Assembly (NCBI RefSeq): GCF_000150275.1
Contig: NW_002060944.1
Coordinates: forward strand, 4,096,123-4,160,122
Source: Trichoplax adhaerens
Lineage: Eukaryota > Animalia > Placozoa
Length of the DNA: 64,000 nt
Reading direction: 5' to 3'
Shown piece after piece: positions 7,659 through 60,054 of the stretch. The position numbers were made by a program, and so were the translations under genes. The notes under the pieces were generated by a model. That model saw only the letters and a program-made list of their open reading frames with translations. It was not told the origin of the DNA and ran no database searches. Within the stretch, counting starts at the first letter, position 1; each line of letters starts with the position of its first letter.

Positions 7659-10600
7659 ATGAAGATTAGCATAGATCGGAAATCGAATCTTTCGATACGC
7701 ATATTGATTATAATTGGTTTAGTAGTCCCCTATCATGCTGTTACGTTGAATCATGATGTTAAAGGATGGGCTACTACATTAGGCGAAGAGATGATGGTAT
7801 TCACCGAAAAAATTCTCTCACCTGGTAAAATTCAACGATTCTATGATGGAATTGATTATCAACAAAATTTAACATCAGCTGTAGCAATCGTTGAAGATTT
7901 AAGGAGGCAGTTGAATGCAAGTTTAGCAGATATCATCAAGTTTGTTCAATCAGCAAAAAGTAATATTGAATCCGGTTACTCATCCAAGCAAGCTCAATCA
8001 TCGACCAGTTATCAACTATGCTGCAATCCAATTAATTTAAGATTTAATAAAGAATTAAATGATAAAATCAATTTATCATCGCCATGCATCACTTTTCCGG
8101 TGGAAACAACGCAGAGTTATATACCTAATTCTTTAAAATTGGCCTATCGACAAAATTTCGCCGACAATTTATCTGTTAAATGGCAATATTTTGCTGGAGC
8201 GGATAACATTTTCTATCAATATCCAACAACCCAAAGATATTGCAAAACGAATTATACCACTGAGACCAAATTCAAGTAAGAATAGCTTATTATAATTTAT
8301 TAATATCATGATCAGAATATATTGCGAAATAATCATTCCTAGAGCTTAAATTAGGATGATAGATTTTATAGAAGTTAACATTATATCGGTCCTACACTTT
8401 CATATTTCATGTTGACTGATTTTATTCCTCCGGGTATACGTAATAAAAATTTTCGAAGCTAGTTGTAGTACCTGAAGAAAGCACTCCAGTAAAAATTATT
8501 CCACGTAGATGTCCGAATAAGAAATTGATTTATTGCATCATATAGCTTCTTACCATTAAGTTAAATTAGTATAAAGATACACGCATGTTTAATTTGAATA
8601 TATTTAGAGCGAGTACGTGAGTACGCACTGCGTGACTCAATTTTCAGTCCTACAAATATATGACAGGACTTAGAAAATATGTTATCATTATAAAGTCTAA
8701 ATTCTTCTAGTAGATTAGCTCTGAAATAATAATTTAAAACCTAGCAAGATTCAATTTGGGTTATGCGACCTGGTATAGTAAAATTTTAAGATAAATAGCA
8801 AATAAATGACAAAATTATAGATACCAAGCTGTTAATAACACTTTACCCTATAATTACGCCACGCACGATCTAACTCTTTTGCAAATTACAGTAGTCTGCT
8901 ATACTAAAGTATTTCAGGATAATATTTCACACAGGCAGTCAAAATTAAAAGTCTACGTTTATTTATAATCCTTTCTAATTTCTGAAGAAGATCTTAAGCG
9001 CATTCATTTAAACATCTAATAATATCGCTTGTGTTGGTCCTAAATTTTCAGAAATTTAGTCTTACTCTTCATTCAAAAATACTGTATTTAAATAATACAG
9101 AATTTCTTCACCACACACACTAAAACACTATAACATTGGCCATTTATTTTATTCTCTATTTACAGGCAATGGTATGTTAATGCTGCATCACCAAGTTCCA
9201 AGCGCTTGGTATTAGTGTTGGATAGAAGTGGATCAATGTCTGGTGATCGATTTTTGAAAGTTAAGGAAGCAGCTACAGCTGTTCTAGACAGTCTTGGACC
9301 AAATGATGAGGTTAATATATGCACTGTATGGAAAACATGCCTAAAATATTTTGTTACTTGTAGAATATCACTTTTCTAATATTATCTACGTAGTACATAA
9401 ATGTTTAAAAAATAGAACACTGAACCTAGACGTTCCAAAGTTTTATCTAAATTAAATAATTATATTTAGAGCATGCATACGGCAATATCAGAGTTAAATA
9501 ATAGTGGCATAATATCCAATTTCAGTAATCTTCAAGTAATCATTTCATATAAATTACATGAGATATTTGCAACAACTTGCAGAATATATCACTCCATTGC
9601 GGTAGTTTCTTAATAAACAACTTACGGCTAATAGAACACTAAAGTTGAGATTTTCAAACGAGTAGTCGTAAAAGAATTTTTAATTGGAGTATACCTACAG
9701 TATTATCATAGTTCGAATAGTATTGTCGTAATATCAAGTCTAAAATCTACAATTAGAAATGATCATTCCACATTTAAAACTAGTAGTGTTTAATAAATAT
9801 TATGAAATTAAATACAATTACATGGTAAAAACTTTCTATTCATGATGGTATCAATATATTGATAGATTGGAGTCATTGCTTTTGACGATGAAATCAGAAT
9901 TCATGGAGGTTGCAAAGTAACCACAGTTTCACCAGCAACACCACAGTCTATAATATTTCTTAAAGATTTCATTAACAACAAAATTCAACCAGAATTTGGT
10001 AAATTTAATACTCTTCATTACAAGCAATTTTAAAAACTTTTAGATCATCAACTTAGAAAGCAATATTTATGTTGAAAATAAGAAATACAATAAGCATCAT
10101 CTTCCATTAACTTTACGTTTACTGCTTGATATTAAATTCAGGGAGTACTGGCTACGTACCAGCCTTGAAACATGCCTTTGATATGTTGTCCACGAATATG
10201 ACATCTAAGGTCTAGCAATAATTCTATAATTAAATAATAGGTTTCTAGATATATCATTAAGGGGAAAAGTATTTTCTTGACCATTTATTTCTATAATTCA
10301 GCCCCATAATGTAGGAAAATGTTAGGCTATTATTTATTAACCTGACAGAATTATCAAGCAGGCGTAAGATAAAAACTAATAATCTTAACCTTCTTATATT
10401 GGATACTGACAGGCTAAAACGAAAACCAACCTTATTGTATTTCTAACGGATGGTCATCCAGATGAACCAGAGTCTCAGATTTTGGATGTTATAAAGAACA
10501 GAAATGAGGCCTTGGTATGAATAATTTTACAATTGATGGGCATTATATATAGTAAAACAACAGTTTTATTCATTAAAAATTACCTAGGAATCCGTTCTTA

Positions 10601-13600
10601 ATTACAACTATTGAGTGTCGAGACAGCAAAAAATTTGTCCTAATCAATCCTAGCTCTCATACTGAGAGTTATTTTAGAATAATCCAGCACAATTTTTAAT
10701 CTTCCTTTCCGGGATTCTGTTTCTCTTCCTGAAACTTATTCTAGAACAATTCTGTGCTAATTTTCACCTACGGTTTTGGAAATCTGAATAATGACGGAAG
10801 ATCAATATTGACAAAAATGGCGACTCAAAACCACGATTTTTCATGGGGAAATCCTATCAAAGTGTGTAAAGATAACATATCTATAATATTATGCTTTAGA
10901 TAGTGTTCTAAATAAGTCTTCTATATATTACGCAAAGTATCCAAAGCCCTATGGACCCAACGGTACTATGACTTATCTAATGGACTACTCTGGCCATCGA
11001 TTAAGAAATCAGATGGGAACATATTACATGAACTTACGGGAATATTCTATCGATATTCAATATACTGTTCCTTATTACGATATAACCTTAGGTAAAAGAT
11101 TTTAATGAATATTCTCTTATAATTCAGATACTACAGCTACAAGATTTTCTATAAACGAGTAGTATGCACTTACATAATTATTAATTACTTTCATGTACAG
11201 GATCCGGATTATTTTTTACGATGTCCATAGCTTGCTACGACTCCAATGAATTGATAGGAGTAGTTGCAAGTGATGTATCACTCATCGAATTATTCCAAAG
11301 ACTTCCCTACTTTCGCTATGGGAAATATTCATATGCTTTCCTAATCGATAAGCAAGGTAAAATTAGCTAATCTTATGAGCTATAGTTACAAAGAAAATGT
11401 TGAAAATCCAATTACTAACTCGAACGCTTCTTAAAATAAATCTATTGACAACATGAGATAATTATAATAACTCTTAGCTTGAAATTTTAAAATAAAAGGT
11501 CGACTATTGATACATCCTAAACAAGCCTATGCAACGAAAACCAATCCTATGCCTAGTATTTTGCAATTGGAAACGATGGAACCAGAATTTATTCAAGTAG
11601 CTGGGATCAATACGATTTTAGATGGAGAAGGAGGAGAAATTTCAGTATTTGTAAGTTATTAAACTTTTGTTAATTTGAGTGGCTTTTACAAGTTATTCCC
11701 AAATTATCCCAATTATTTTAACAATTATTTTAACAATTATTAGTAAGATGATGTGCTACGCTATTCATGATTAAATATAAAGCTGCAATAATTCTAATGA
11801 TTTAGAAAATGTAGTAACATGTCTATCCAAAAACTATGTATCAATGTCATTTTTTATATCAGGCACCCCTTTATCTTGCAAATGGTAAAGATCCGGCTGA
11901 TGGTAGCCAAGTATTATTTAAGAATCTTACCTATGTCTGGCGCCCAATACCAAAGTCCCCATTTATTGTTGTGGGCGTATTTCCAATAGAAGATTACGTT
12001 CAAAATAAAGCCCAAAACGTGAGTGAAATGACAAATTTTAATGTTAATGTCACATCTAGAACCTTCCCAATTCTACGCTATATAGACTTTGTTATCGCAT
12101 TTTAAATATCTACGGTTCCGTAATGCATAAAATATCTAACACTTTGACTATTAACAGTTGTAGATATTCAATGAATGAGCGTTTTTATGCTATAAAACAA
12201 TCCTAATATTAACATGAATTATTTCATCCCTAAGGTGTATTGGCAGTCATTTGATGAGCCAGCTAATTATCACAATTTGGATAATGAATCCATTGCTAAT
12301 GGAATCAATATTTGCCTGCTAAACACGATAGCACTCTCTCCTAATAATTCAACCGTTAAGGTAATATCTATTCATCCAATCTGAGATCTCTACAAATTGA
12401 TTATCTAAGGTATTCCATTTGCAAGATAAGAAATAATTAACTTCACGATATTAAATTCCGTCTTTACCATCTTTACAAAACAATCATTATGACTAGCTGG
12501 CTCCTGGTAGTTTCGTGCTCCCACTAAGCTATATCGTCTATGGTGAAACAGAAAGGCTGAAATTAAATATTCAACAATATTTGAATAGCAATGCAACTAA
12601 CAATACCAATACAAGTAGGTTATAAAGTCTTTAATACTCTGCATAATCAGGTAAATTAAATTTCGTAATCATAAGCTAAGATTGCAATTAAAATCTTGGT
12701 CATCTTGTTCCACTAACTTCCTACTGTAGTCATCAATTCAGATGTTAAGCCAGATGTTATTACTACTGCCCATATCATTCCAACATGGCTGAAAAATAAA
12801 AAGTATAGTGAGGAAAATGGAGTTATATTTAGGTACAGTACGTCATAGTTATCATTTTTAAGTAGTAATAATACTGATATTAACATATATATTAGTATGT
12901 GAGCAACTCTTTCTCTTTTTATTTTTCTTTTACTGTTTTACTTCATATTATACATTTATGTTGTTATATTACTACTTAAAATAAATTAAGGGATAATCCA
13001 TATAATTTTGAACTCCACGTAACTAATATCTGCTGCGTTAGCAATGCGATATTTTATTAAGTAAAACAAGTTGTATTGGGTCATAATCAAGAGTGCTCAT
13101 AATATATTATGCGAAATCGATATTTACATCATTACTTTGAAGTCCTTCAAAATTTTATTGATAGCTTGGTAACTTTACTCAATTTTCCTAGATATATGGC
13201 AACTGAAAGTGGAGTATTCCGTATATTTCCTGGTGTAGAAGCGAATATGGAATATGATCCGAGGCTTGATAGTTGGTATCACAGATCATTAAAGAGCTAC
13301 TCCAAGATTACTGTATCATCACCGTTTAGCGAAAATGATAAAGCTTGGAATGGTTATGTTACTGTTAGTAAAACTATCTATCAAGGAAGGTATAGAGTGC
13401 TAGTTTTATCTCTTAACTTGTTTAATATATGATTTAAGAGGGTTCTATGGCCATAAAAATACCATATATATTCTTACAGAAAAGATCATTACCATCCTGG
13501 CAAAGGTGAAGTACCTGTTGGTGTTGCTGGCATGGATGTAACTTTTGGCCACTTTCGTAATGTGTTAATAACTGGGGTGAGAAATGATTTCTGAACGTCT

Positions 13601-16600
13601 AGCAAAGAAAAACGTAGACTATTTTACCTAGATCAGCCGCTAAATGAATCGATAATGTTGAAATGTTCAGCATAGCGATGTATTCGTCAAATTATTGCGA
13701 TATGTGCTAATATATATTTTACTAAATCAAGTTGACACCATGATCTAAAATGTTGATTTCTGTTATTGTAGGCTCCACAATGTGTTCTTTCCGATAACGA
13801 TTGCTATATTTTGGATAAATTAGGGTAAATAAAAATTCGTCGATATGGCGCATTTTGAGCGTTATTAGCGTTACTAAATGAGAATCTGTAAAACCATCTA
13901 TTAGTAATTATGATTTTTCATATCTTACTCTTGACTAGGTATATTATTGCTGACTTTAATAACAAAGCTGCGCAAAAGAAGGAACATATTAGTCAAAAAT
14001 TTCCTTGGCTCACCGCTTATTTAGTTAGCAAATCTTCAGTTCTTGAGGTATTTCTTAACAATGTTATCATGGAACAGCTATATCGGGTAAAATTGAATAT
14101 CTCTAGCAGAATAACTCTAATGCACTCGTTTATATCATTTGCGTATAGGGAACCTACTGCCGAGACTTTGAGCATGATAAAGCACATTTATTCTATTCGC
14201 TGAAAAACTTCACCATAATCAATCCTGATGTCAGCAATCCATGTTATAGTTTTGCTTTAGCATCAGTTCCTTACGGAGATTTCTACCTATTGGTTAGACC
14301 ACAATCGGCACGATCATGTAATTTTAATAGCCCACCTCCAGAATTTGAGGTAGGTTTCTAATGTAACGTCGCATCCAATTTTCTTTAATTTTTGGCTCCT
14401 AACATAAAAGGGAGCTCTAATTTTTATCAATTCACCAATGCTTTGAAATTCACTTTTATAAAATACTTCTAGAGTACTTGTAGCTGTAATAGTAATAAGA
14501 CGTGCTCTAACTGCAACGGAATAACTTCGATATGTCAGGTTAGTATACTTAGCGGAAAGTAATATTCATCTTACCGCTTCGGTGCATAAAGATTGTACGA
14601 TAAAAGTAACTCTTGGTTGAAGGCATTTAATAACTCGTAATTATGTCAGATTGCTCTTTCCTCTCCTAATTGCACAAGAACTGACTTATACTACCCCTTA
14701 ATTAATATTTTCTCAGTGCCCTTGTTCTTGCCCGCTTGGGCATGATCCTTGTACTCTTAAGACGACTAGCAATGCATCCGTTGTCTGTCCAAGTAAGTGT
14801 ACTGCGTATACTGTAAAGACATTATGTCGTTATGGATAACAATATTCGCTAGCGTAGAAAATTGAAACAGAATGATCAAATCAGTTGTAAAGTCTAACGG
14901 AATCATTTTTGATATTCTAGTTTATTTGCCCTATAAAAATGCAACCTATAATACTGCTACTCGATTAATTAATACCGCTAACCAATGCGATAGGGCATGC
15001 GAAATAGCGTAAGTCAATTTCATGTCATGAAGATATTCTGTTATATTTCCCTTTGATATTAATTTTGTCAGATAGTACTTTTATGGACTTGATTTGTTTC
15101 TGCATTGACATCTCTGATTTTATGAAGAGCTAATGAAGAGCTCTGCTTGATTAAATCATCGTGTAAATGGTGTGGAAATCAGAAAGTGCCAGCTTGTTCT
15201 ACATTTTGTTTAACTAATACAAGGTAAAAATGCCACGCAAGGACGCTTTAACAACTCTTTACTAAGTATTAATGCTATTTCTTTCTCTCCTACATCAGTT
15301 CTAGCGGATCATTTTGTATTTTTGGTGAGAATCCTCTATTACTAGATGCTTTCGAAAGAGATAAGCTTAGAACATCAGTTGTCCAAAGTCTTAATGCATT
15401 CATTGGTAATATCAATCCAAAATTGATATGGAACATTCGATTTACTACCGTAAGTTTGAGTATTGATAAAGCATGCAATGTTTTACTATAGGGAAAGAAG
15501 TAGCATTCTATTCGTTGCCCGGAATTTAAAATTAATAGGATAGAGCTTGCATTATTATTACGGCTTCTACAGCCGAGATAGTGTAGAGCTATTCTTCAAT
15601 TTTCTGTTATCTGATGCTGTCAAGAAGCTGTAAAAGTATAAAATCTTTATCTTAATTACAGTCAAAACATAATTTCTATATAAAAGTAAATTTTAGTTCT
15701 ATAATAACACATAATATAGCCATACTGAATTCTTACTTTTAAAATTAAAGGCTGGCCAAGTTTTCTATACTATTTTGGGCTCCGATGTGACACCAAATCC
15801 AGGATATTTAACTAGCAATATCTCCCAAGCAATTAACAACAGCCAAGTTTATATCAATTATTATAATAGGAAATTGGCACATATGGAAAATATTTGCACA
15901 ACAGGCCAGTAAGTCTGAACTAAGTATCAATTAACTATGGTATGATTTTATGCGTTAATATCTAACATGTGTATAACTAGAATAGATTGCTTAAGAATAA
16001 TGTTAAACAGCGTCCTATCTAAAAATAGCGAAGATTCTATACCTTATTCTTTATAGAACGAGTTTCAATTCTCGTAATTTCAAAAGAATTATCTTATATT
16101 CGTAGCAAATTGTTAGAGTATTTCATTGACTCGTAAACCTTTACTTCATGATTCGATAGCTTGAAAATAAATATTACATTTAAGCCACAAGATTTCTCTG
16201 AATACAACCAAGATACCGTCAAGATTGAATTTCTTAGATTTATCGAGGCTATAACGAGAACAACATTTCAATCAAGAATTTTGCAACGTCGATTGGAAAG
16301 CGTATGTGTTACTATTATAATTTATTATCGTTACCTTTAGTATTTACGCGGATCAGAAAAAGCAGTAAGTAGATGATTATATCAATAACAGTTTATCTCT
16401 TGTATCCTGTTGTAGTCTTCTTTCATGTTAGCTGTCATTAAATCTAAAAGTAAAGACCAAATCGAGGCAGAAGTAAAATCGCTTCAACAAGCTATCCGCA
16501 ATGGGATATCCATAGATCTACTTACTTTGCACAAGTCCTTAAAAATTCATCGACTTTATATCAATGGCAATCTAACTGAAACTTTCGTCCCAACGTAGGT

Positions 16601-19600
16601 TATCAACGGCTGTCGTCGTTATCGATAAATTCCTATCACATACTTAGATATCTATATCTGCGTCTTGATTTTGGTTAGTTACGTTTATGTCTGCAAATAG
16701 TCTCGAAATCATGATGTCCATCTAAGAGCTTTTAATTACAATCTATTACTTACATATTTTCTCTACGCCTACCTTTTTGGGTAGCAAAGTTATACCTAGA
16801 AAAATGTGTAGAATTATTTCTAATATTTAGATATCTCTTTCTGCGTCTGTGTTAGGTAGTTAAATTTATATCAGGAGAAAATTTGAAAACTATCGTAGTT
16901 ATCTAAAGCTTTTTAATAATCGTATCTACCATTTAGATTTCTTCCCACTCTTATTTATTATCATTAATATTAGATTATTTTTGCATCATCTCTATTTTAA
17001 AATTCTAGGTTACTTATTACCTTGTAATGTTTTTAAGTACTACAACAGCTATCAACATTGTTTAATAGAATTTAATACTTAAAGTACCGGTTTCTACTTG
17101 TACTTCCGATAAATAATTATATCTGCAGAAGGTCTGAGAAAAACTTACTGTATTACAGTCTTCCATATGGTCTTATCAAAATTGAAACTTGGATATTTTC
17201 AATACTTTGGGTGAAACTTATACTAGTGAAAGCTCGATAGACATTAGAATCGTCTACAGCCGAGTTAACATTTAATATAAAACTTCCGCCGCTTGCATCA
17301 TATTTTAGATAGCGAATTTATAGTATTTTAGTACCTAAAAATGTTCAGTAATCGCGCAAGTTAATTTTTAGACTAATACTTGATATTTCAAAGTATTTGC
17401 AGCGTCTATGGTTTAAGTAATTAATTTATGCTATATTGAAAGAAAACTTCAATTTTAGCATAATTATGATAGATATTTGCGGCACTTGCTTTTTTTGACA
17501 ACTATGATATGGAACAAAGCAGCTAAATACTTAGCTTAATTTTATCTTACAATACAGGATTAACGTGACATTCCAAATGTCCCGAAATATGTCAAACTTT
17601 TCTATGCCAGAAAGGGCTGAAATTTCAAATCAAGTTATTCCACTCCTGAGTGAATTATTTAACGCATCAGTTGCTTCCAATGTGAAGAATCTACGAATAG
17701 TAGATGAGGTTAGATATGTCATAAAATTGGCCATAATGCGTTTTCATCATAATCTTTAATATTATATGAATAAATCGCATACAGGGTGTTACATTTACCT
17801 TGGTTGGCGGTATCATCAATGATCTCTATTCATTCAGAGATGAAGAGATACGATTAGAAGAAGCCACTAAAACTGGTCAGATAGTCCTGAATACAACTGA
17901 CGAAGCTGGAATTATTGCACAAAAGTTATATATAAATGATGGCTTTCGAGTCAAGTTGATAGTACCCTCGTAAGTGTCAGGAACAGCAATCATTCGTTAA
18001 CCTGTTCTAAGCAAATTCTATACTATTTTTACGATTACTTAAAGTAAATCTTACTATAGACTGTATATTTAGTAACAAAATGCTACACATAAAATCTTAC
18101 ATCAATACTGAAGATTAATCCTATTTTCATTCATATTTAGCATGCTATTGAATCTAACCTTCTCCCATATGAATATGGACAGCAATGACTCAAGATTGTT
18201 TTCTGAAAGAGTCATAGTCAGTTTAGAAGATATATTACAAACCAGTCTTAAAAATAGGCTAAAGGATATTAGCATGGTTAAGGTAACTTATAAAAATTAT
18301 GTTAAAAAATAGACAACTGCAACAGTAATACTAATTTAAGATAATACAAAAAATGTAATTTCATTTTCTTACGTTACTATAATAAATTAATTATAGAGCC
18401 ATTTTGGCTGCCAGTTAGCGGGTCAACTGATTCAAAAATGGTATCCTATATCGCAAGAAATTGAAAAAATTAGAGCTTCAGTTAACAGAGGATTATATAT
18501 TCAAAAATTGGATAATCATTACGCTTATGTTGTTCGATTGTTTCAAGAATTCAGGGTTATCGCTGAATATTCACCATTGTAAGGAACATATTGCATAGTT
18601 AAAGTGTTATTATTTATTTTACCTAAGCTTTATCCTAATTTTCGAGATATTATGATTTTTATTACTTAAAAAATAGATTAATGAGCTCGCACTCAGTGTT
18701 TAACGTGAACATGATATTAACAAAATTAGAGAGATTGAATTGATGCATCAGTTCAATTTTAATTTGATTTGATTTAGTCAACCTTTGTCCCTACATTTCC
18801 CTCGAATATATTTTGGTAACTTTCAAGAAACACGAATGAACGCCATCTCCAAGAAATTATTATCTATTGTTCAAAAGATCTATAATGGTGATAGCATTAA
18901 CTTTGTTCAGGATGTTATATATTCCTTGGTAAACAGACACTGAATTGTGTGGTGATTCTACATGATTAATCCTAACCATCGAAAACCAAAATAAAGCTTA
19001 AGAGGTCTTTTAATTCGTAATTTATTTATAGGATAAAATAAAATTTCATCTACTCCGTGAAGTCTGGAATGAAGGAAGCATCAAAATTTACGATTTAAGT
19101 TTCTTATCAAATGGGGTTGCAGACGGAAAATTTACTCATTTAATCGATGATATACCACGATTAAATGCTCTCTATTCTGATAACCTTATGCAATCGCAAT
19201 ACATTCCTAGGTAAATTGCTTATTCCTATTTAATTTAACATTCAACTAAAGTAGATGCATTTTGAACTGTTTAAAGATGCTCTTTTTAATACAGAAATTA
19301 ATCATTTTGAACGATAAAAATAACTGTATGCTATTTTCATTACTTTAATATCAGAATACCTATGATCATGCAATTCCCAAGTTATATTACCAAATCTCTC
19401 GATATATATGAGAGTAAAGAAATGGAAACTGATATTATTACACAAATGAATAAGATTTTATCCGATAATATGATCAACCGAATTTTAAAATCAAATCTTA
19501 CGGCTGATGTAAGTAATCTCTAATTAAGAAATTTAACATACTTGCAGTCTTCTAGTTACATCAATATGCGGCAGTATAACACAATGTCGTATTTTACCTA

Positions 19601-22600
19601 ATGCAACGCTATATCTCTCCCCGTTTGCAAATGTAGGGTAGATTTGATTTTATATTGCGAGGTACAGGTAGCGCGAATTTACCAAGTCTACAGCAAGAGA
19701 CGAATACTTTAGCTCAGAGTATTAAGAAGAAATTGCTTATACAATTACCACAGAATAAAACAGTTCCAGTATACCGATATTATTCCAACAGAGTACTGAA
19801 AGCAGAATATCTGAATAGGTAAAAATGTCTAATAATTCCTATGGTTACATTTTATTGCTAGACTGAGATTTAATAGTCACCTAATTTAAAGGACATTAAT
19901 CAAAAAATTTTCTAATATGGATAATTTTACTTGCAGCATTGGATTTTCGTTTACCTTCACTTGTCAGAATTTGAATGGTATCAATCTTACAGATATCAGT
20001 GCAATCCAACTGGCAATTGATAAAAAGTTAGACCACGTTCTCGACAATGGTGGAACCGTTAAACCAAATAGCACCATCATGTGGCAGGTAAATCAATAAC
20101 CTAGTGATGTAGTAAAAGACTATCTGCGGTAATCATCACTCAATTAAACAGATCTACTTGTACTAAGATAGTCATGTATAAGCTACAAATACTGTATATA
20201 TCAATGCGAGCTCACAAAACTGTACCTCGGTTTATCTCACAATCTACATAATTATTAATTATTCCAATCGGTGAAATATCTTATTAGAATCAAATCATAT
20301 TTAATGTATATGAAAATGTACACTTTCGAAATTGGTCGGATATTGCAAAACAAGATTTAATTTATGGTGTCAAAAGCAAATTAGAAATTGATCTGCCTTC
20401 AAATAATTGTACTATTATTGCCACAAAGCTTTACTCACAAGCTGAGTTACTGGCAATCTATGTTCCAAGGTAAATTTAAACTATTTGATTTATTCATCTT
20501 TAGCCCTTTCATAAATAAGCATGGAAAAATTTGCTAAGACTAGAAGACAACCTTGTTGTGTAATATTGTAAGAAGATTTAACTCTATTCCCTCATCCATT
20601 GTTGTTTTAGTACCCCAATCACTTTTGCCTTAGCACTCAAAGTGCCAGTTATGTGGAGTAATGAAATTCTTTTCAACAGCATAAAGCAAGCAATGAAGAC
20701 ACATACAGGAAGAGGATTAGAGAACAAATTGGCCAAATTCTCATTATCGGGGGTATGGCTTACAAGAGATATTAAATCAAAATGCTTTACTAAGAATCGA
20801 TCGTGATGCCGCAGAAACTAAAATTTAATAGCCGTTTTTTCAGTAATCCTATAAATTATAATATCATAATAATACAATGCTAAGCAAGTACAGTAGATTA
20901 GCTCACAATATATAATGCATTTTGGTATATCTGAGTATACAATAAATTATTCATACCGATTTTCAAATTGTAAACCCGTTTTTCGTCATACACATTGCTA
21001 CACTAAATATAGCCGTAAGTAAAATTAATAACTTTTACGAAATTTTACCGTAGAGAAACGCTACGTTCTATGTCAATGGATTGCATTACTACAATCAGTC
21101 ATTTATGGATACCGATGTTGAAGCTATTAGTCTAAGTGTAGAAAACAAGCTTACCCTCCAATTATCCAATAATTCGATGACATATGTAACTGAAATGATA
21201 CAGAATGGCACAGTCCAAGCAAGTTATATGAAAAAGTGAGTACTTCTTTAGTAGGATATGGTTAAAATCTTGATTAAATTTATATTAATGAAAGCTTGAT
21301 TCAGCAATTTCTTGAAATATTAAGCACTATGCTAATGTATTGAATGATACAATGATTTCGTCATTTTTTTAAATAGGTCCGTTATGGTGCTAACACTACC
21401 GCCAATCTACTTAAGCTCACTCAGTACCGGAGATAAAAGTATCGTTAGCCAACGTTTAATGGAAAGTCTTCAACAAACAATTGGAATAAATACGAAGCAA
21501 CGCATGATTGGTGGTGTTACCATCTATAATGTAAGTGATCAATTTGCTCCTCTACTTAATACAAGCGGTAAAGAAATTATTTTAGTATTTATAATTACGT
21601 ATCCAGAAATATCTTAATTCTATCATATAACGTAGAAGTGATATTAACTCCTCAAGATGACAACTCGCCAGATGAGTCTTACTTTTTCTATATTTTTAGA
21701 GTAATATCACCTTCATGTTGATGGCAGATATAGAAAACGATGCTGAAAATAAGAAAGCTATAGAAGATATTAAAAAATTAGTTATCGTAGGATTTACGAT
21801 TTATTTACCAAAATCAAACGCGCTTGTCCGCAAGTTTTACTCTGATGATATATTTCAAGCAGAGCACGTGCCAAGGTAATGACTGCGTTTTAGGTTTGAT
21901 ATGCGCATTTTCTAATCTTTATGGCTATAAAGCAAAATTTAAATATCAAAAATGGATAATAAATAACGCTTTAGTATGTGGACTCTGAGCGTCAATTGGT
22001 CCACTTTCAATTTGTAAAGCATGATATTGATGCATTGAATACGAATATTACGATATGGATCCTTGAGATATAAAAATTTGAGTGCCAGTTCTCTCATGCA
22101 TTTAATCTTATTTTGCAGGTCTTTGATACGATTTGAGTTGCCAGCTGCTAATTTATTAGATTATAGCCAACTACAGCAGAATTCTATCAAGCACTCGATT
22201 CTGCTCGAGCTGCAAGAACGTTTCCTTACTAATAGCAGTGCCAAATTTACAAATGTCACTTTACTCAATGTAAGAATCCCTGAAAATTGCTATGAACTAT
22301 TCTCTTACTTTATCGCATTTAATAATAATTGCTTCTTGCTTGGCTAAAAAAGGATTAAAATATCACCTTAGTCAATGTAAGAGTCTCAGAAAATAGCTCT
22401 GAAAACTGTGATACCTTCAGTAAAGTCTTGTTAATAAGTCAAATAGCTCAATTATCCTACTTCTCTTTTAATTTATTACATTTATTAATAATTGTGTCTT
22501 GCTTGGCTATTAAAAACTAATTTATCAGCTTAGTCAATGCAAGAGTCTCAAAAAATAGTAATGAAAATTTTTATACCTCTAATAGAGTCTCATTAAAAAC

Positions 22601-23976
22601 TACATAGATTTGTTTTCCTATTACTTTTTACCTATCCTCATTGTTCATAACCGCTTATCCTATTGACTAATAAAGAAGTACTCTAGATTCAACCGTTAAT
22701 ACCTCTATTCTGTTTTATTTTATCACTAAAAATTGCTTTTTATCCGACTAATAATGTCCTCTCAACGCTTACAGAACGGAATCACCTTTGCATTGTATGA
22801 GGATATAGATGTTGAAAAATCACTCTTTGAAGAAGTTAGCTATATCGGGAAAACAGTGCAGCAGGGTTTTTATTTAACCTATCTCGAATCGAAGAAAATT
22901 GTTCGTAGGATGTTTGTTGATAAAGCATTCTGGTCTGAATATCTACCGAGGTATATTTAGATGCTATCATTGATCAGAGATTGTAAAACATTATATAATT
23001 CTAATTTCTTGTATCTTTGCTTAATCTAGCGAGTTGGTTTTGTTAGAATTCCTGGGTGTCGCTTTTGATAATATGACAGCAAGTGAACTAAATCAAGTAA
23101 AAACAACACTTTTTGAGAAAGTTAACCAAACTATTGGTCTATCGGCAATCCATCGTATAACTGAAACCGCTATTACTGACGTAAGTTGTCTGAATATTTG
23201 TACATGGGATTGCACTACATGACGATATTTTGATGTTCGTTGATATCATTCGATTGTAGCAGTATACATCAATGTAATTTTACATGGATCACTGATAAAG
23301 TCGATAATGACATTTGGAGTAGTTATCGTTACGATTATTGCTTAAACTAAATGATCATCAACAGTCTATTCATCATTACTAACTTTAATACTTATGATTG
23401 TTAATTTATTAGAATACAATTTCCTTCACCCTGACTGAACATCCGTTTAATGGTGATTCTAATGTACCTGAAACACTCCATAGTGATATCGCAAAACTAA
23501 ATGTCAAAGTCAAGAGCGGATGGTATTGGCAACTTCCAGTCTATCAAATGACACCAATATCTGGCATCTACATTAATGGAAATCTTACCGAAGAATATAT
23601 ACCACCCACAACAGAATCACCTCTATTCCAAACAGCATTTCCAGATAATACAACAGCAAACAACCAGAGCAGCCTCAATAATCATGTTGTTATTACATTT
23701 AGCTCGCTTCAAATGAATCCTATATTAATAGTAGTCATATCGGTTATGGTTTTCATTATACTTGGAGTTGGAGCAACTGCAGTTGTCATCATGAAAAGGC
23801 GAGAAGAAACGAAATATCGATTGTTGCGGTCCAGTGCTGATGTAGCCATTTCTGCTGATGATAATGACGATTATGTCACACCTATCGAAGTAAAGCGGCA
23901 AATATTAGAAAGTGCTAGAAAATTGCCTCCGCCTCCAACTGAAGTCTCTAACAGTAGTTATTCAGCACCATATTAA
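7659..23976 (+). CDS. CACHD1: CACHD1/alpha2delta-family VWA and Cache domain protein with an 11-module extracellular stalk; 44 coding exons, about 2,371 aa, type I membrane protein
   Basis: Hand-spliced GT-AG exons of the head: 7659-8275, 9166-9310, 9866-9998, 10142-10209, 10413-10514, 10745-10861, 10938-11091, 11201-11356, 11499-11650, 11863-12018, 12235-12360, 12497-12614, 12730-12832, 13192-13389, 13480-13576, 13772-13824, 13939-14047, 14149-14349, 14473-14538, 14717-14792, 14921-15008, 15128-15223. These are followed by 22 stalk exons (15299-23976). All phases are compatible and the total is 7116 nt, divisible by 3. Motifs seen: signal peptide; WQYFAG..YP; QWYVNAASP..LVLVLDRSGSM (VWA); IVFLTDG; IGVVASDV; YAFLIDKQGRLLIHP; RYMATESGVFRIFPG; GVAGMDV; CSC..CSNC..CQCPCSCP; CKWC. 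The order and spacing match CACHD1 as I recall it. TM helix ILIVVISVMVFIILGVGATAVVIM is near 23722-23793. Family assignment is firm; 1:1 orthology to CACHD1 is not established. Confidence 0.9.
15299..23610 (+). repeat. Array of 11 divergent protein modules (~103-112 aa), each encoded by a two-exon cassette within the CACHD1-like gene
   Basis: A/B exon pairs: 15299-15449/15751-15908, 16160-16301/16416-16594, 17558-17708/17785-17969, 18141-18282/18397-18578, 18778-18928/19032-19210, 19355-19508/19637-19818, 19937-20087/20288-20469, 20611-20752/21054-21235, 21377-21530/21700-21875, 22119-22269/22775-22950, 23030-23180/23413-23976. Every A exon is 142-154 nt (phase 2 to 0). B exons 1-10 are 158-185 nt (phase 0 to 2); the last B exon runs on into the TM and tail. 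A C-terminal motif like LYxNGxLxxxYxP recurs. Confidence 0.88.
22250..22580 (+). repeat. Triplicated exon-end/splice-donor segment in the intron after module 10A
   Basis: aaatgtcactttactcaat|gtaagaatccctgaaaattgc (true donor, 22270), aaatatcaccttagtcaat gtaagagtctcagaaaatagc (~22358) and tttatcagcttagtcaat gcaagagtctcaaaaaatagt (~22521). The block taataattg..tcttgcttggcta is also repeated. Confidence 0.75.
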
Positions 23977-25403
23977 ATGATGGTTATTACTTTACCCTTG
24001 ATAGTTATTCTTGATCCTATAACTACATAAATTAGTTATGGCCGTAACAATGACGTATTAGTATCATGACTCAAAATATGCTCTTTTCATCCAGTTGCAG
24101 ACGGTTTTTCTATCTAAAGCTGGGAAATTATCCGTCCATATTGGTACTAATTGATGATATATCTTTAGTATTTCTATAGATAATAAAAGGATATACTGCA
24201 ATTTTCTAATTATTCTAATACATTATTTGAAATGTACAAAAGTATTTATAGTGCTAATTAGTTAATATGATATGGCTTCGTTGATAATATTAGAAAAAAT
24301 TATCAAATCAATACAGTATGTCAACAAGATGCCAGTAAATGTCAAATTTTTGCTGCTAATCGTGTCGATTTCGAGCAATAAATTTGTCGGACAATCAAAA
24401 AAAGATTTAGATTACAGAATAGGTCAGTTTTTGAAGAGCTGTTGTTCACTATTGCTAAGAGATCAACTGATGTACATTCTGTTACAATATTATTCTACAG
24501 CAGTACTACGTCAATCATATTAGAAAATAACATGGGAACAAAATACCTTCTAGTTAATATGAACTTGAAATGGCCAGAAAGATATTTTATTTTACAATGC
24601 TGTGCTAACACTATAACATTTAATTTAATGCTATCTATTTAACGTGAATTATTATCCAATTTAATTAATAAGTTTGCCTTTTCAATAAATAGAGTCAAAC
24701 CTCTAATCAGAAAATTGATGATACCAATTAAGATAATTTTAAGCTGAAAACTTACACGATAGAGGATATAATTATAAAAATTATTAAACTCAAAATAAAA
24801 CTATTGATAAACCGTCTTCTGCCTCGTGTTTCGGATATAACCTTCTATTTTAGGACATTAAGAGAAAATTTCCAACATTATAAACGCGTCTTTGCTGTAC
24901 TGTATACTCGTATCCAGGGTATTGTATAATCGATTTTATTGCTCCTTTCAACTTAAAATAATCCTATGGATGTTTTATTCTATTTTTGTGATTGCAAGTC
25001 CACCCGAATTTTTAAGATTACTGAAGAAGTGTAGTAGTCCAAAAGTGAGACATTCTGAGTATATTCTAAACATTTAGATGTCGTTCCTATCTGTTATCAC
25101 ATTAGCAACGCACTGCACATTTAAGTGAAAAAATTTAAGGTCAATATACGTATAATATAAACGCATAGAGATTGACCGATTTGGCTGCTTTAGCAGAAAG
25201 AATTTCGTTATTTCGCATTTTGGTGAGTAGAGCTCGTCCGATATGAACTTTCTGTGGCATCAATATCGTGGAAACAGTATGTAGAGTACTTATTGCTTGG
25301 TCTAACATTTGATTACAACAGTTTTTCATAAAAATGTACCGGCACACTATAAATTCAATTTAATGTAGTTTGCTATGGCGATTCCTTTTGATTCAGAGAC
25401 GCA

Positions 25404-41605: not shown

Positions 41606-44460
41606 ATGAACTCTTCTTCTCAAAATTTGAACTTACCATTTGCTTTAAATGAGCGCCCTAGAGGCGGCTCAAGATCATCATCAACTGCTAGTGCTGATAT
41701 CAGCAGTAATGGAATTAAGCATAGATCCAGGAAACACGCTGCTAAGGTATTACATTATTTCAATAAATTGCGACGTAAAGGTCAGTTGTGTGATGTAACA
41801 TTGGTCGTTGAAAGTAAAAGATTCTACTGCCATCGTGGTATTCTAGCGGCTTGTAGCCCTTATTTTCGTGCCGTATTTAACGAAAATTCATCAATAAATC
41901 CTGAAGAAGAAATTTGCATTCAGGATGCGGACGAAGAATCAGTTGAAGCTATCCTTGATTATATGTATACGGCAAATATTATAATTAACGAAAATAACGC
42001 ACATATTCTATTTCCTATTGCTAGTCTAATGCAACTGGATGAAATATTGGATACTTGCTCTCAATTTTTAAGGGATCAGCTAACTCTTTCCAACTGTTTA
42101 AGTGTACGAACTTATGCTGATGATCATTCGTCTCAAGACTTATATCAAACCGCAACAGCTTATATTCAAGAAAATTTTACTGAGATTGTACTACAAACTG
42201 AATTTTTGGCATTATCCATAACACAATTAGTGGCAATCTTAAGATCAGGTAATCTTAATGTTCCGAACGAAGAATTTATTTACCAAGCAATTATCGATTG
42301 GGCAAGGTATGATATTAAGCAAAGGCGAGATCAGTTACATCAGGCTTTACAGCATGTTCGTTTATCCTCGCTTAATCCTCGATATCTAGTTACCGTTGTA
42401 AGTCAAGAACCACTAATTAGATGTGATGAAAAATGTCGTGATTTAGTAGATCAAGCAAAAAATATCCTACTTTTACCAGAGGCGATTGCGAATAGAGCTA
42501 ACACTACCACCGTTAGAATTCATCAATCAAAGCAACCTCCTGTTACTAACATGAATGGAGCCAGCACTACTATGATTTACGTTGTAGGTGGTTGGAGCCA
42601 TGGAAAAGCTGATAATACTGTTGAAGTTTGCCATGCATGCTATGGAAACTGGAAAGTAGTTTCTAAAATGAATAAACCGCGATATGGAGTTGGTGTAGCA
42701 GTCTTGGAAGATAGTATCTTTGCTATTGGAGGTCATGGTAAGTTTCTTGATATCAGATCTTCGTATCTATTCTTTGCTAAGTTAAACTTATCATCCAAAA
42801 TCTCCATCACAGATTGTACAAGAGCTACTATGTAGGATAAATTACCTCATTCTTCATTAACAGATTGATCTATCCCTGTATTAACTTGTGTAGAAATACT
42901 AAGTTAGTTAAAAAAAAGAAAAATAAATAGTATTGCAATCAATTTTTTAACATTCACATCACCAACCTTGCGTACTATCGATCCTGTCATTCAATTACTA
43001 TGTATATAAACACTAATTTAAAAGCGTACGACAAAGTAAGTCAGAGGTACGATTACTGCATATATAATTTGTCTAATTCTTTGAACTACTATAATACTTT
43101 TTACATCACGTAGATGGTAAAAATTATTTAGACACTGTGGAACAATTTAATCCGAAAACAAAGTATTGGTCTCTAGACATTGCGACGACTCGCACTTGCC
43201 ATACCAGTCATGGCGTTGCTACTGTAAATAACTGTATTTACGCCATTGGAGGCCAAGATGGCGTTTCCAGTTTAAATCTAGTCGAACGTTATGATCCTCA
43301 TCACAATGAGTGGTATTCTGTTGTACCCATGAAATCTCGTCGATTAGGGCTTGCAACGGCTGTAGTAAATAATTGTATTTATGCTGCAGGTGGATTTGAT
43401 GGTACTGCGATTCTTTCAACAGTTGAACGGTTAGATCCTAGAGAGAATCAATGGGTAGCAATATCGCCCATGAATAAAAGAAGAAAGCATCATGGAGCAA
43501 CGGTTATCAACGGTAAGTGTAGTTTTACTGCTATCGATACCATTTTAGTATCTACAAACGCAAAATGAAATCTACTAAAATATTTATGCTAATAATGATA
43601 TGGTAATAATAGATACAGCTAAGGATTAGCTGCTTTTTTTATTAAACTTTTAACCAAATAGCGCCGTCTACATTAAATTGTAGCCATGTAAAGGTTAATA
43701 TCTTAATTAAACTTTCATACCAATCGTACAATCTTCATTGAATAGCAACTATCCACTTAATTTTTCTTCTAAGGGGGATTAATGTAACATCCATTTTAAA
43801 AGTCTAATAAATGAAGTCTTCTATTCCTATTCATATAACAGAAGAAGTTGAAATAAATGCTTTAGTAGACATTGTCATTACATTAGAAACTTTCACGATA
43901 TAATATGATATTGAAATAGACAACGGCAGAAGTAGATATCTTGGATAGGCTGGATAGCTAGCGTCAATTAAATGATTAATAGCTGAATTGAATAACTATT
44001 CATTTACCCTATCATTGCGGTTGTTTTGACCTAAATTAAAGTATGATTGATTTGTCATAATATTCTTCATGAATAGCTTACAGTTGTAGTCAATAATTTA
44101 GGTATAAATTATAGAAATTTGACTTGTTCTTTAAAATCTCAGAATCAAGTCAAATATTATTAAATTCTAGGAATATTGCATGTCGCTGGTGGACGAGATG
44201 ACTCTAAAGAACTTAAAACTGTAGAATATTACGATAGCAGAAATAACACCTGGATTCCAACCACGTCTATGACTACGTTACGTAGTGGAATGATCCTGAC
44301 TGCATTCAATGACCAATTAGCTGTAATTGGCGGCTTTGATGGTGTAGATTACTTGAAAAGTGTAGAGATACTTGATAGGGAATTAGAGGAGTGGAAATAT
44401 TGTTCAGGAATGAATCATTCGCGCTTAGGAGCTGGTGTTGCCGTGTTAGAGTCGCCTTGA
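41606..44460 (+). CDS. Kelch-like BTB-BACK-Kelch protein (CUL3 adaptor), KLHL20/diablo-like, 3 exons
   Basis: Exons 41606-42737, 43114-43512, 44171-44460. BTB (LCDVTLVV..HRGILAACSPYFRAVF), BACK (NCL..EFLAL..EE.IY..W), a KLHL20-like linker (EPLIRCDEKCRDLVDQAKNILLLP) and six GG-containing Kelch repeats. Confidence 0.92.
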
Positions 44461-52449: not shown

Positions 52450-54304
52450 ATGGAGGAGGATTCATCTATGAATGAACGCCTAAATTATTCACGTTTTACT
52501 AATTCAAAAAGAAGTTTGGGAGGCGCCTTCTTCATTTTACTATATATTACCATTATCGTTAGTAACTTTATCTGTGTCATTAAAATAATAAAGCAACATT
52601 ATAGAAGAAAGAAACGAACACTCGATATTTACAGTCAATATTCCTATGGTAAAGCTCATGCGTTTATTATCGTTTTATCATCATCTAATATTTTTTTTCC
52701 ATTAACATTATCGCCTATCATATTAGTACCCAATTTTATTGGTAGATGGATTGGTCATCATTCTGCTTGCTATGCTAGCACCTTTCTATTGGTGACATGG
52801 ACTAATATTAGCACGATTGTATCCCTTTTTATGGGTTTTGAACGTTATGTTGCGGTAAAAAAGCCATTTCAATATCAGCGTATCTTAACATGGTATAACT
52901 TTACATTAGCTAACGTATGTATGGTGATCTATTGCTTGATGATAGCCGGGCTTACTATTCGATTTGATATGACACGATTTTATGAACAAGTACCGTTATG
53001 CTATACATATTATAATTTATCTTCAAGAGAACAACAAGGAGTTTTAGCTACCAGCACCATTACACATAGCTTATGTTTCATTTTATTAACTCTGACAAGT
53101 ATACTAGTTTTACAAGAATTGCGGCAGATGCATCATCGCATATGTCAAGTTGCTTCTGTACAGGCTAATTCACGAGATGATCTGAATATACAGCGTTCTA
53201 GACTTATTAGCGTTGGGCGGAATCCAGTAGCTGCAACGCGAAAAACAGCTAAAGTTACAATTTTAGTAACGACAGTCCATTTAATTTCATGGCTTCCAGG
53301 CAGGGTAAGTAATTCTTAAACTTCTTCTATTTTAATCTGTTTGATACCAAAATTCCATTTTTACCTTTTACTAGCAGAATAGAATTATTAATTACTCTAT
53401 TGATATCAATTAGATATTAAATTTTTTATTTAATCTATTTTAGTGTCACAATTTTATTACTATTCGCTCTAGTTTCAACAAATTGGTATTAATCTTTTCT
53501 ATTTTCTAATGCTTAACATCATTTCACGCTATGCCCTTTCCATATCCAACGAATAGGAGCATTTTGTTTCCTATTTTTCACTAGTGGAAGCTGCCATTCA
53601 CACTATCTAGTAAATAAGCAGCGAAATATTGACTACAGAGTCGTTGTGTTTGCTATTTAGTATACACAAATGAGATTATTATTCGATGAGAGCAATTTGT
53701 TATGTAACGTCTTTGTGCCTCTTATTTGTGTTCATTACTTTAGTAATATGTTCATAGGCAATTTGACAGGAAGTCAGCACAGTACTTGAATAATGCAATA
53801 GAAATATGTTCGTAGACAATTTGACAGGACGTCAGCACAGTACTTGAATAATGCCTTAGCAGATTCTAATACGATTACGATTGTGTTAACACATAATCAA
53901 GAAGCTATAAAAAAATTTCTATTATCTCTACTGTTCTGTGTTAAAGTGAGGACTATTATAAGTTATTGTAGCTGAAAGATCACAAATTTCATCCTCTTTA
54001 TGTACCAAAGTTTGAAGTTATAAACCAAATGATAGTATTTTATCTTAAAAGATAGAACAACAATGAATGCTTACTACCGAAATGATTAAACTTTGTTTAA
54101 GAAATTTCATACTGACACTTACAAGATCTTATTTAATATTTGTAGATTGCGCAGTATTGGATGATTACTACAGGAACTATTCCTCCATCTGCTTGGAGAA
54201 TATCTATTTTACTTGCTCGAATAGCTGAAACAATCATTATTCCGTTAATCATCATTGTATCAAGAAAAAAAAATATTAGACGATATCTTAAAAGATTATT
54301 TTGA
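52450..54304 (+). CDS. Rhodopsin-class GPCR, prostanoid-receptor-like, 2 coding exons
   Basis: Exon 1 (52450-53304) covers TM1-TM6, with WIGHHSAC, MGFERYVAVKKPFQY and ISWLPGR|gtaagt. Exon 2 (54146-54304) supplies TM7 (AWRISILLARIAETIIIPLIIIV) and a short basic tail ending at TGA. A polypyrimidine/AG acceptor sits just upstream of the ATG (52441-52442). Confidence 0.85.
53745..53854. repeat. 58-bp-period tandem duplication in the intron of the first GPCR
   Basis: aatatgttc(a/g)tag(g/a)caatttgacagga(a/c)gtcagcacagtacttgaataatgc at 53745 and 53803. Confidence 0.9.
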
Positions 54305-57300: not shown

Positions 57301-60054
57301 TATATACAAAGGTATCAGTAAGTCTATTTGATGTTAACCTAAATTTCATCCAGCAAAACAAAAATTGCGCAGTACTTGCATGATAGGATACTATAGAAAT
57401 TTATTGAATATAGTAGGTAATGACGTTATAAATATATCATATTATATACATAGATATGAGTTTCGTATATAATATACGGACATACGTACGTATATGCCCT
57501 TGCAAAGGTATACATTATCCAGTATACAAGTATAGCAAAAAATTTTTTCTATAGAAATTGAAATGCAATCAAAACACAGTCTAAAAATCGATTGAATCTC
57601 TCAATTAATAGATTTAATTACTGGCTCCCGGTATTTTTGTTCGTAACATTAATTACCTACATAAAAGCTCAGATTACTTCCGTCGAAACTAAGAAAAGAG
57701 ACCGTTAAGTCTGCTACACTAAACAATGCCTCCCGTATAAAAGATAATGAAATAAAGTATCTCTTTGAATACATAACATTACATTGGCCATTGACACGTA
57801 CGTAACAAAAACTACAATCCGATGCCAAATATCATTACAATCAGAAGATAATCGCCAGTTATAATTGTAAACTAGTTCTGTTTCATTAATGACCATTATT
57901 TAAAAATTCTTCAAATAAATTAAATATTCCGTATTATAATTTAAATACAGAATAAAGTACCGGTAATTGTACTGATATTATAGATGCTCTCTCTAGTAGG
58001 TACCGTGGTTATGATTAGTTGAAACGAAAAATAGACAAGTCCTAAACATAATCATCGCACGTCAAATAAATTAACTGTACATTATTATACGAAGAGAAAT
58101 CGATCTACTATTTCCAGAAAGGCTATTACTAATCAAAGCTTTCCGAAATGTTAATCAAATGATTCAATTTCTTTAAATCTCAGCAATTACGAACTTATAT
58201 CACAAACTTGGTAGTTTAAAGTGACGTTTAAAAATTTATGTAATTATCTCTCCGATGTCACAACATATATACTACTGCTATTTCAGTTTAAGTTTGAAAG
58301 TCACGTAGATAGTATACAGTGTGAGATTTAGGAAAATATTAAATAAAGATTTTATACAGTTGGAATTGTCGACTAATAGAGTTAAGGAAATGGTTGAACT
58401 CTGTAATGGCCTTCGAAAATAATTAATACAGCATTGTCTATTAATTTGAACTAAGTATTGTCAAAATATGATGAAAAATAATTAAATATCCTTTACTGAA
58501 GATTTCATACAAGATATTCTAGAAAAATCATCACTTATATTTTGTCCTGTAGGAAATCTTCATTTAGCTAACGAATATTGCTTCTGTTATGTTATTGGTA
58601 TTGTTTTCATTTGCATGTCTATTTTTTGAGACTTTATAGTGTTTGTTACGTCATTTATTTTAAATATTACATCATTGTTTTCTATGTCACTTGGAGACTG
58701 GATTTACTTAATGTTGCCAATTTAAGCTTGGATACAATTACTTAAAAATGCTATTTACTAAATGTAAATACAATATCTATTTTTAAGTTAAAATGTATAA
58801 GGTTTAAATTGCTACAATTCCAGATCAAAGTGATAATTTCAGGTTTGTTCCCATAAGATATCAATTCTTATTCTCAGAGAAGTAAATTGTTTAACGTTTG
58901 AGAAATGAAAATCAATCTCTGGCAGAGACTGTTGTATTAATTATTTGTGGAGAAGTAGTAAAAGCAAATTTTATTAATACCACAACCCTTAAGAAACCCA
59001 TTCAATATTCTAGTTGTATAAATCCTCTCCTACGATAAAGTTATTGGATAGAGATTCTAGATAATCTAGAAGATTCTCTAAGATAAATAGTTACCAACTT
59101 TTCAAACTTATAGTGGTACTTACTTTCAGTCCTAATGGTATCATTCTAGTATAACTTTATACGCTGCATTCGAGGTAAAAAATTTTATAGCAAGATATAA
59201 ATGAATAGGAAAATATGAAGTCATTCACCTCATTTAACTTTTAGGTTACTCAATCTATAGGTAATTTAGAATTAGATTGTTGATTTTATACTGACTGTAC
59301 AATAAATATCGATAGTCAATGTTATAAAGAAAAACAGCTTTGTTGTTGATCTTAGGAATACAACTACTGTCAGCTTGAGTAATACTAATTATAATCGAAA
59401 TTTTGCTTTCCTAGGTATCAATAACTTAGAATTAAATTTACTTCCTAGGATAAAAATAACCCTGGGAAGATGTATATAATAAATACTTATAATTTGTAAA
59501 ACTATAATAATAGCAGGTCCTAGATCATTCTTTATGTTAAATTGTATTTACCGTTGCGATAGTGAAGAAATCACGTAATATCTATAATTTACCTATACAA
59601 ATCTTAATCTTATACAAGTATTTATTGTTGCCATGATATTATTTTATTTATACTCATTATCTACTGGACATTTGTTGTCTCGGCGTTGTCATTATAGCCT
59701 GTACTTTTTATTTATATTATGCGTCATATAGAGTCTGATTAACTAATTATTTGGCAAAATAATTTAACCACCGTTATTTGAATGCTTCCATTTTTTGGCC
59801 TATCTATTCATTACTATCCAATCACATGTTTGACATATGCATATATAAAGGGAGTATAGCAAAAGGACATCATTCACAAATTATTACATCCTTACGTTAA
59901 TATTTCAATTATCGAAAATCATCGTGTTTAGCAAGCAACGTTTCGACTATAATTATCTGCAACGGTCAATACTATGATAATTTATTACTTCAACATTGGC
60001 TATCCATCAATTTACCATTAATACATATGTAGATTGCTATTACCAACTAGAAAA

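Follow-up and report, generated by a model that had tools for sequence, protein, structure and literature searches.

CACHD1 bridges Frizzled and LRP6 and modulates CaV channels, and in vertebrates its ectodomain sits directly on the membrane. Why, then, does a gene of the placozoan Trichoplax adhaerens appear to place a long row of repeated modules between a CACHD1-type head and the membrane, and what are these modules? The gene lies in a stretch of 64,000 nucleotides (nt) of assembly GCF_000150275.1 (contig NW_002060944.1, positions 4,096,123 to 4,160,122 of the forward strand), called the window below; positions are counted from its first letter. The window has ~31% GC and is intron-rich, and the assembly comprises 105.6 Mb in 1,414 contigs. 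The reading preferred here, to which a probability of roughly 0.62 can be attached, is that 7659-23976 on the + strand is one gene for a type I membrane protein, the placozoan orthologue of CACHD1, and that it carries a glycosylated spacer grown by duplication of a two-exon cassette. All searches, alignments and fold predictions were made exon by exon, on half-modules.

Exon architecture of the stalk

A search for frame-keeping exons with GT and AG borders gave one consistent solution for the stalk, with 22 exons forming 11 A/B pairs (modules 0 to 10) from 15299 to 23604 on the + strand. The A exons measure 142-154 nt and the B exons 158-185 nt. GT..AG borders are found in 22 of the 22 introns of the model, the phase is 0 in all 11 introns leading from A to B and 2 in all 10 leading from B to A, and the length of each of the 11 modules (309-345 nt) is divisible by three. 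The last exon of the head ends at 15223 with a phase 2 donor (AAG/GTAAAA), and a 75-nt intron separates it from the acceptor at 15299, the two phases agreeing (2/2). At 31% GC, stop codons occur at a frequency of 0.078 per codon and an open run of at least 50 codons would be met by chance with a probability of ~0.018, so that 22 long open frames in strict register far exceed what chance would provide. The splice sites of the stalk are mostly strong; the acceptor of module 0 exon B (TTAAAG) is weak. The introns are 76-505 nt long except for that between B1 and A2, which has 963 nt (16595-17557), and no degenerate extra modules could be detected with the A and B profiles in this intron or in the long one between A9 and B9 (22270-22774).

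Geometry, phases and splice sites are thus all consistent with the proposal of the initial annotation that 22 exons in 11 pairs precede a single transmembrane (TM) helix. The peptide strings that it quoted were all recovered in their frames and positions by a three-frame reading of 14800-24100, and the spacer of ~1,200 residues that it described has 1,194.

The A9 donor region exists in three copies. The end of A9 (~20 nt), its donor and the start of the following intron recur at 22251-22296, 22358-22403 and 22520-22565, the copies having 83% and 70% identity and lying at spacings of 107 and 162 nt. Copy 2 retains AATGTAAGA, and copy 3 has GC instead of GT. Use of the later donors is unlikely because of an in-frame stop at 22345, and the three copies look like the remnants of a partial local duplication.

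Relatedness and conservation of the modules

The modules are divergent. Pairwise identity is 10-30% among the A exons and among the B exons, with a common pattern visible in the alignments. When each exon in turn was left out of a profile hidden Markov model (HMM), which was then run against all open segments in the six frames of the window (888 in number), eight of the 11 B exons ranked first (E from 8e-3 to 2e-9), B2 and B4 were weak and B0 failed; three of the 11 A exons (A3, A8 and A10) ranked first or second. Against composition-preserving shuffles the B set scored z = 23.7 and the A set z = 11.9, with each of B1-B10 at 8.6 or above, the A exons at 2.0-8.3 and B0 at 1.3. Judged by their sequences, modules 1-10 are homologous. 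Of the 11 divergent modules originally claimed, ten therefore stand on module-to-module profile similarity and the first does not; module 0 is at best a shortened, divergent copy. No relationship could be detected between the A half and the B half, and an internal beta-alpha-beta duplication is not supported.

Composition also bears out the initial annotation, which had called the modules Cys-poor and rich in sequons. There are only five Cys in the 1,194 residues (0.4%), and N-x-S/T sequons number 27 against 13.4 expected from composition. The modules adjoin directly, without the linkers rich in proline, threonine and serine (PTS) seen in mucins.

A profile of B1-B10 run against 1.84e9 representative proteins gave two genuine matches, both to exon-sized open reading frames (ORFs), P0002 and P0004. 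Five further matches (P0001, P0003 and P0005-7) were rejected on inspection as unrelated repetitive proteins. Running the B and A profiles against a collection of 5.8e9 proteins added P0008, P0009 and P0010. These five ORFs come from other public assemblies (ENA and Logan contigs) and are one-to-one, gapless orthologues of single exons, with identities of 63% for B1, 65% for B7, 78% for B3, 77% for B8 and 65% for A5, and 82-95% positives. The B3 and B8 alignments run past the exon, and in both the similarity ends where the exon ends or slightly earlier. P0008 conserves FGCQLAG and the 18397 acceptor is for this reason favoured for B3. P0008 and P0010 are each found on three contigs, the longest having 7,706 nt for both; location on one and the same contig would fit, B3 and A5 being 1 kb apart in the window. 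Gapless conservation of exon-sized ORFs indicates that the array is coding, under constraint and older than the split of these genomes.

Within the 105.6-Mb genome the A and B profiles match only these stalk exons, so the module is confined to this gene. A long protein containing the modules was not found among the 1.84e9 representatives, which hold exon-sized ORF fragments only, and the last exon (187 residues) found nothing among the 5.8e9 proteins. The presence of such fragments alone in the protein libraries agrees with a gene left without annotation or annotated in pieces, the latter having been foreseen for automatic annotation.

A CACHD1-type head, probably on the same gene

Pfam searches identify VWA_N, VWA, dCache_1 and VGCC_alpha2 in the head. 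Four head exons match the CACHD1 chain 8s7c_A among the PDB sequences, at residues 59-225, 229-284, 476-528 and 737-809, with genomic order kept, and for each of them the best match in the alpha2delta family, or the sole one, is 8s7c_A. Chains of alpha2delta-1 are matched by the VWA exon only (E ~4e-3), more weakly than CACHD1. The earlier description of the head as CACHD1-like is thereby borne out, by the domains found and by co-linear matches that rank ahead of alpha2delta. The exons at 13457-15223 (~290 residues) are in the place expected for CACHD1 residues 810-1102, so that head and vertebrate ectodomain would be of similar length on a rough count. The Cys-rich exons among them (14473-15223) occupy the position of the FZI domain and have no match among PDB sequences; the TM helix is not adjacent to them, since the 11 modules lie between.

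The topology is that of a type I membrane protein and not of a glycosylphosphatidylinositol (GPI)-anchored one, with a signal peptide, a single TM helix, a basic stop-transfer sequence (KRREETK) and a tail of 60 residues. An N-terminal hydrophobic stretch at 7659 provides the signal peptide, the sole TM helix follows module 10, and a three-frame reading of 14800-24100 revealed no start codon followed by a signal sequence from which the stalk could be made separately. Given also the matching phases across 15223/15299, a single gene is the parsimonious reading.

According to Gauberg et al., Trichoplax has two alpha2delta genes, one CACHD1 gene and one alpha2delta-like gene (PMC8980814). On the matches described above, the gene considered here is identified as the CACHD1 gene of that set. 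Two other VWA_N loci, ~68 kb apart, are present on another contig (G000:C1410:7648081-7648424 and 7716349-7716818), and the match at one of them contains an in-frame TAG, probably because of an intron. These two loci may correspond to the pair of genuine alpha2delta genes in that set.

Fold of the module

The alignment columns suggest an alpha/beta module. In the A half, a strict h-x-h-x-h strand is followed by a loop in which an aromatic residue is conserved, by a helix whose amphipathic pattern puts hydrophobic residues at i, i+4, i+5, i+8, i+11 and i+12 in the column statistics, and by a hydrophobic segment that is less clear. The B half has an x-I-x-F-x-L strand, a helix, a Gly, an h-x-h-x-h strand, a loop, L-Y-x-N-(G/D), and a hairpin ending in Y-h-x-P. 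The order of elements would thus be strand, helix and perhaps strand in A, then strand, helix, strand and hairpin in B, an order that may be compatible with a non-cleaving SEA-like or a ferredoxin-like sandwich, and so with the beta-alpha-beta-beta-alpha-beta arrangement suggested in the initial annotation, to which a further hairpin would be added.

AlphaFold2 (AF2) models of half-modules, each made with its own 10-row alignment of paralogues, gave for B8 a helix (residues 14-29) and a hairpin (45-55) at a predicted local distance difference test (pLDDT) score of 64. A two-chain model of the A8 half with the B8 half, run without alignments, gave an ipSAE of 0.01 and is no evidence either way. 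Nothing was found with Foldseek using the low-confidence B8 half-model. The ESM Atlas yielded no usable match for B8, and the leads for A10 were all below 0.9. Searches of Pfam and of PDB sequences with the stalk halves were empty.

The strongest competing explanation concerns the SEA domain. The modules may truly belong to the SEA superfamily but have diverged strongly and not be cleaved, like the tandem SEA repeats of MUC16 or the ferredoxin-like domains next to the membrane in PCDH15 and dystroglycan, in which case the stalk would be a juxtamembrane array of a known kind. The length of ~108 residues and the likely strand-helix-strand order in each half are as expected of such a domain, and the modules are predicted to be extracellular, Cys-free, glycosylated and juxtamembrane. 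By eye, there is a resemblance to genuine Trichoplax SEA domains in the N-terminal 'hxhxF ... F/L ... amphipathic helix', and hhalign places the A helix on SEA helix 1, the expected position, although not significantly. However, at E<=1 the SEA profile PF01390 matches none of the stalk exons, although eight genuine SEA domains were recovered with it from other places in this genome, and hhalign of each half with an alignment of six genuine Trichoplax SEA domains gives a probability of 0.4% for both, with the B half aligned to the wrong (N-terminal) part of SEA. The module also has an additional C-terminal hairpin. A G/SVVV-type motif is found at none of the A/B junctions, whose residues are variable (TT/AG, ES/SS, DE/GV, VK/SH); as many SEA domains lack it, its absence excludes only the cleaving type. 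The SEA-like or ferredoxin-like assignment made in the initial annotation gained no support from these comparisons, and membership of the SEA superfamily is a tentative proposal with the balance tilted against it.

The genome does contain a cluster of canonical SEA domains, with loci L011, L014, L016 and L018 within ~55 kb (G000:C1412:3935383-3988962), L016 having an in-frame TGA. On C1328, a small contig, there is a copy identical to L011 (L012), probably through duplication in the assembly.

Proposed origin and function

In the single CACHD1-type gene preferred here, ten clearly homologous cassettes and a degenerate first one would separate the CACHD1-type ectodomain from the TM helix. Each two-exon cassette would encode an N-glycosylated, Cys-free alpha/beta module of ~108 residues, and the array would have grown by tandem duplication of the cassette. 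The outer borders of the cassette are in phase 2 and the inner one in phase 0, and therefore duplication, loss or skipping of a cassette keeps the frame. The duplications would be old, because identity is low between copies and high between orthologous copies. A glycosylated rod resembling beads on a string is most likely, because the modules adjoin without linkers, are Cys-free and have twice the expected number of sequons. We infer that the stalk acts as a spacer and not as the ligand-binding part, so that the VWA/dCache head would be held far above the membrane. If each domain is assumed to contribute 3-4 nm, the distance from membrane to head would be a few tens of nm. A long rod would need to bend for docking in cis, whether in a CACHD1-FZD-LRP6 assembly or on CaV, and binding in trans or directed to the matrix would be the alternative.

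Several points count against this reading. The gene model has module 0 (15299-15908) included by exon size and phase alone, sequence support being lacking, and A6 and A7 are weak (z ~2). We infer from the splice model that head and stalk share a single transcript with the exon usage given here, and that no long protein was found in the libraries could be due to low expression no less than to a gap in annotation. The half-models are of low confidence, their sole strands being those of the C-terminal hairpin of B8; A8 is modelled as a single long helix (pLDDT 77) without strands, probably over-extended for want of its partner half. Both the length and the rigidity of the rod are guesses. The last point concerns the head. 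The adhesion site dependent on metal ions (MIDAS) of vertebrate CACHD1 is degenerate. That of the VWA domain here, in window 9200-9240, reads VLVLDRSGSMSG and contains an intact DxSxS (DRSGS; DRSGSMSG), so this mark of CACHD1 is not seen, and binding of metal and ligand as in alpha2delta may have been retained by the head of the placozoan protein.

A further proposal goes beyond the spacer. With no detectable relatives among the 1.84e9 representative proteins, the module is a candidate new domain. On a bolder reading it would represent an undescribed extracellular domain family restricted to placozoans, and its eleven-fold expansion would have made a CACHD1 co-receptor that otherwise lies close to the membrane into a long-reach receptor acting in trans or in the mucus or glycocalyx, and not in cis on Frizzled/LRP6 or CaV. 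We consider this combination of claims doubtful.

The array might instead serve mainly for alternative splicing; the prevailing isoforms may then have few modules or none, and the protein with 11 modules may be rare. The strict phase 2/phase 2 symmetry of every cassette would allow it, and the triplicated A9 donor region hints at local rearrangement. However, the modules are conserved one-to-one at 63-78% identity, which argues that each is used, and the splice sites are mostly strong. This explanation is unlikely.

That head and stalk are two distinct proteins, the head being secreted if the 15223 donor is left unspliced and the in-frame TAA directly behind it is read, and the stalk belonging to another transcript, would suit this stop and the lack of an annotated long protein in the libraries searched, but it is very improbable given a stalk with no start codon and signal peptide of its own, matching phases (2/2) across a good 75-nt intron, a sole TM helix located after module 10, and a head that, ending at 15223, would miss the TM helix and tail of CACHD1 proteins (PMC7615972).

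If the single CACHD1-type gene is correct, a conserved spacer of ~1,200 residues in placozoan CACHD1 implies another working geometry in an animal without neurons, and the protein could reveal the ancestral ones among the interactions of CACHD1. The cassette would be a clean example of the growth of a domain array through duplication of exons with symmetric phases. As the gene is apparently missing from the protein collections searched, proteome-based comparisons may treat it as truncated.

Features of the locus and its neighbourhood

Table 1. Features of the CACHD1-type gene in window coordinates. The z values are from composition-preserving shuffles, E values and ranks from the leave-one-out HMM.
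Feature	Position	Strand	Evidence or remarks
CACHD1-type head: signal peptide, VWA_N, VWA, two dCache, Cys-rich C-terminal exons	7659..15223	+	~21 exons, ~1,100 aa (rough count)
Module 0 exon A, divergent	15299..15449	+	splice model; z=3.8; no HMM support
Module 0 exon B, short, divergent	15751..15908	+	splice model; z=1.3; no HMM support
Module 1 exon A	16160..16301	+	splice model; z=3.7
Module 1 exon B	16416..16594	+	E=4e-6; orthologue P0002, 63% identity
Module 2 exon A	17558..17708	+	splice model; z=6.0
Module 2 exon B	17785..17969	+	splice model; z=8.6; leave-one-out weak, E=1.4
Module 3 exon A	18141..18282	+	rank 1
Module 3 exon B	18397..18578	+	E=2e-6; orthologue P0008, 78% identity
Module 4 exon A	18778..18928	+	splice model; z=5.8
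Module 4 exon B	19032..19210	+	splice model; z=10.2
Module 5 exon A	19355..19508	+	orthologue P0010, 65% identity
Module 5 exon B	19637..19818	+	E=2e-9
Module 6 exon A	19937..20087	+	splice model; weak, z=2.2
Module 6 exon B	20288..20469	+	E=8e-3, rank 1
Module 7 exon A	20611..20752	+	splice model; weak, z=2.0
Module 7 exon B	21054..21235	+	E=8e-6; orthologue P0004, 65% identity
Module 8 exon A	21377..21530	+	E=2e-3, rank 1; AF2 half-model helix, pLDDT 77
Module 8 exon B	21700..21875	+	E=5e-7; orthologue P0009, 77% identity; AF2 helix and hairpin
Module 9 exon A	22119..22269	+	splice model; z=5.8
Module 9 exon B	22775..22950	+	E=7.5e-7
Module 10 exon A	23030..23180	+	rank 2
Module 10 B half (first part of last exon)	23413..23604	+	E=2e-4
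Juxtamembrane linker, 37 residues, S/T/N/P-rich	23605..23715	+	
Single TM helix, 26 residues	23716..23793	+	followed by basic stop-transfer KRREETK
Cytoplasmic tail, 60 residues, and stop codon	23794..23976	+	

In the cytoplasmic tail (23794-23973), a membrane-proximal YRLL (a sorting motif of the YxxPhi type), an acidic DDNDDY and a PPPP run were noted by eye. Further downstream on the + strand, at 41606-43568, 52450-53319 and 60034-60942, translations inspected by eye suggest a BTB/Kelch-like gene and two intron-poor ORFs resembling seven-TM receptors; these appear unrelated to the stalk.

Comparison with known proteins

Three known systems resemble parts of this protein. The stalk invites comparison with tandem SEA arrays (MUC16), the MAD12 domain of PCDH15 and dystroglycan, which like it have juxtamembrane, glycosylated and Cys-poor alpha/beta modules of ~110 residues (glycosylation of the stalk being predicted) and a similar order of secondary structure, as far as the latter can be deduced from the column patterns. 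The stalk differs in showing no similarity to SEA in sequence or profile, no autoproteolysis motif and no mucin PTS spacers, and in the extra C-terminal hairpin ending in Y-h-x-P.

The alpha2delta proteins (CACNA2D) share the VWA_N-VWA-dCache head, but their match is weaker than that of CACHD1 or absent for every head exon tested. They are GPI-anchored near the membrane, whereas the protein here has a TM helix, a 60-residue tail and a stalk of ~1,200 residues.

Vertebrate CACHD1 (PDB 8S7C/9EQ6) is the closest in overall plan, having, as here, a signal peptide, VWA_N, VWA, two dCache domains, a Cys-containing C-terminal ectodomain, a single TM helix and a short tail. Two differences lie in the head, namely the intact DxSxS of the MIDAS and the FZI-equivalent exons without a detectable match. 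In zebrafish Cachd1 the TM helix, at about residue 1122 of 1290, comes directly behind the FZI domain (PMC7615972). The initial annotation was therefore right that vertebrate CACHD1 has no such stalk, and relative to it the gene of Trichoplax carries ~1,200 extra residues, as 11 modules between ectodomain and TM helix.

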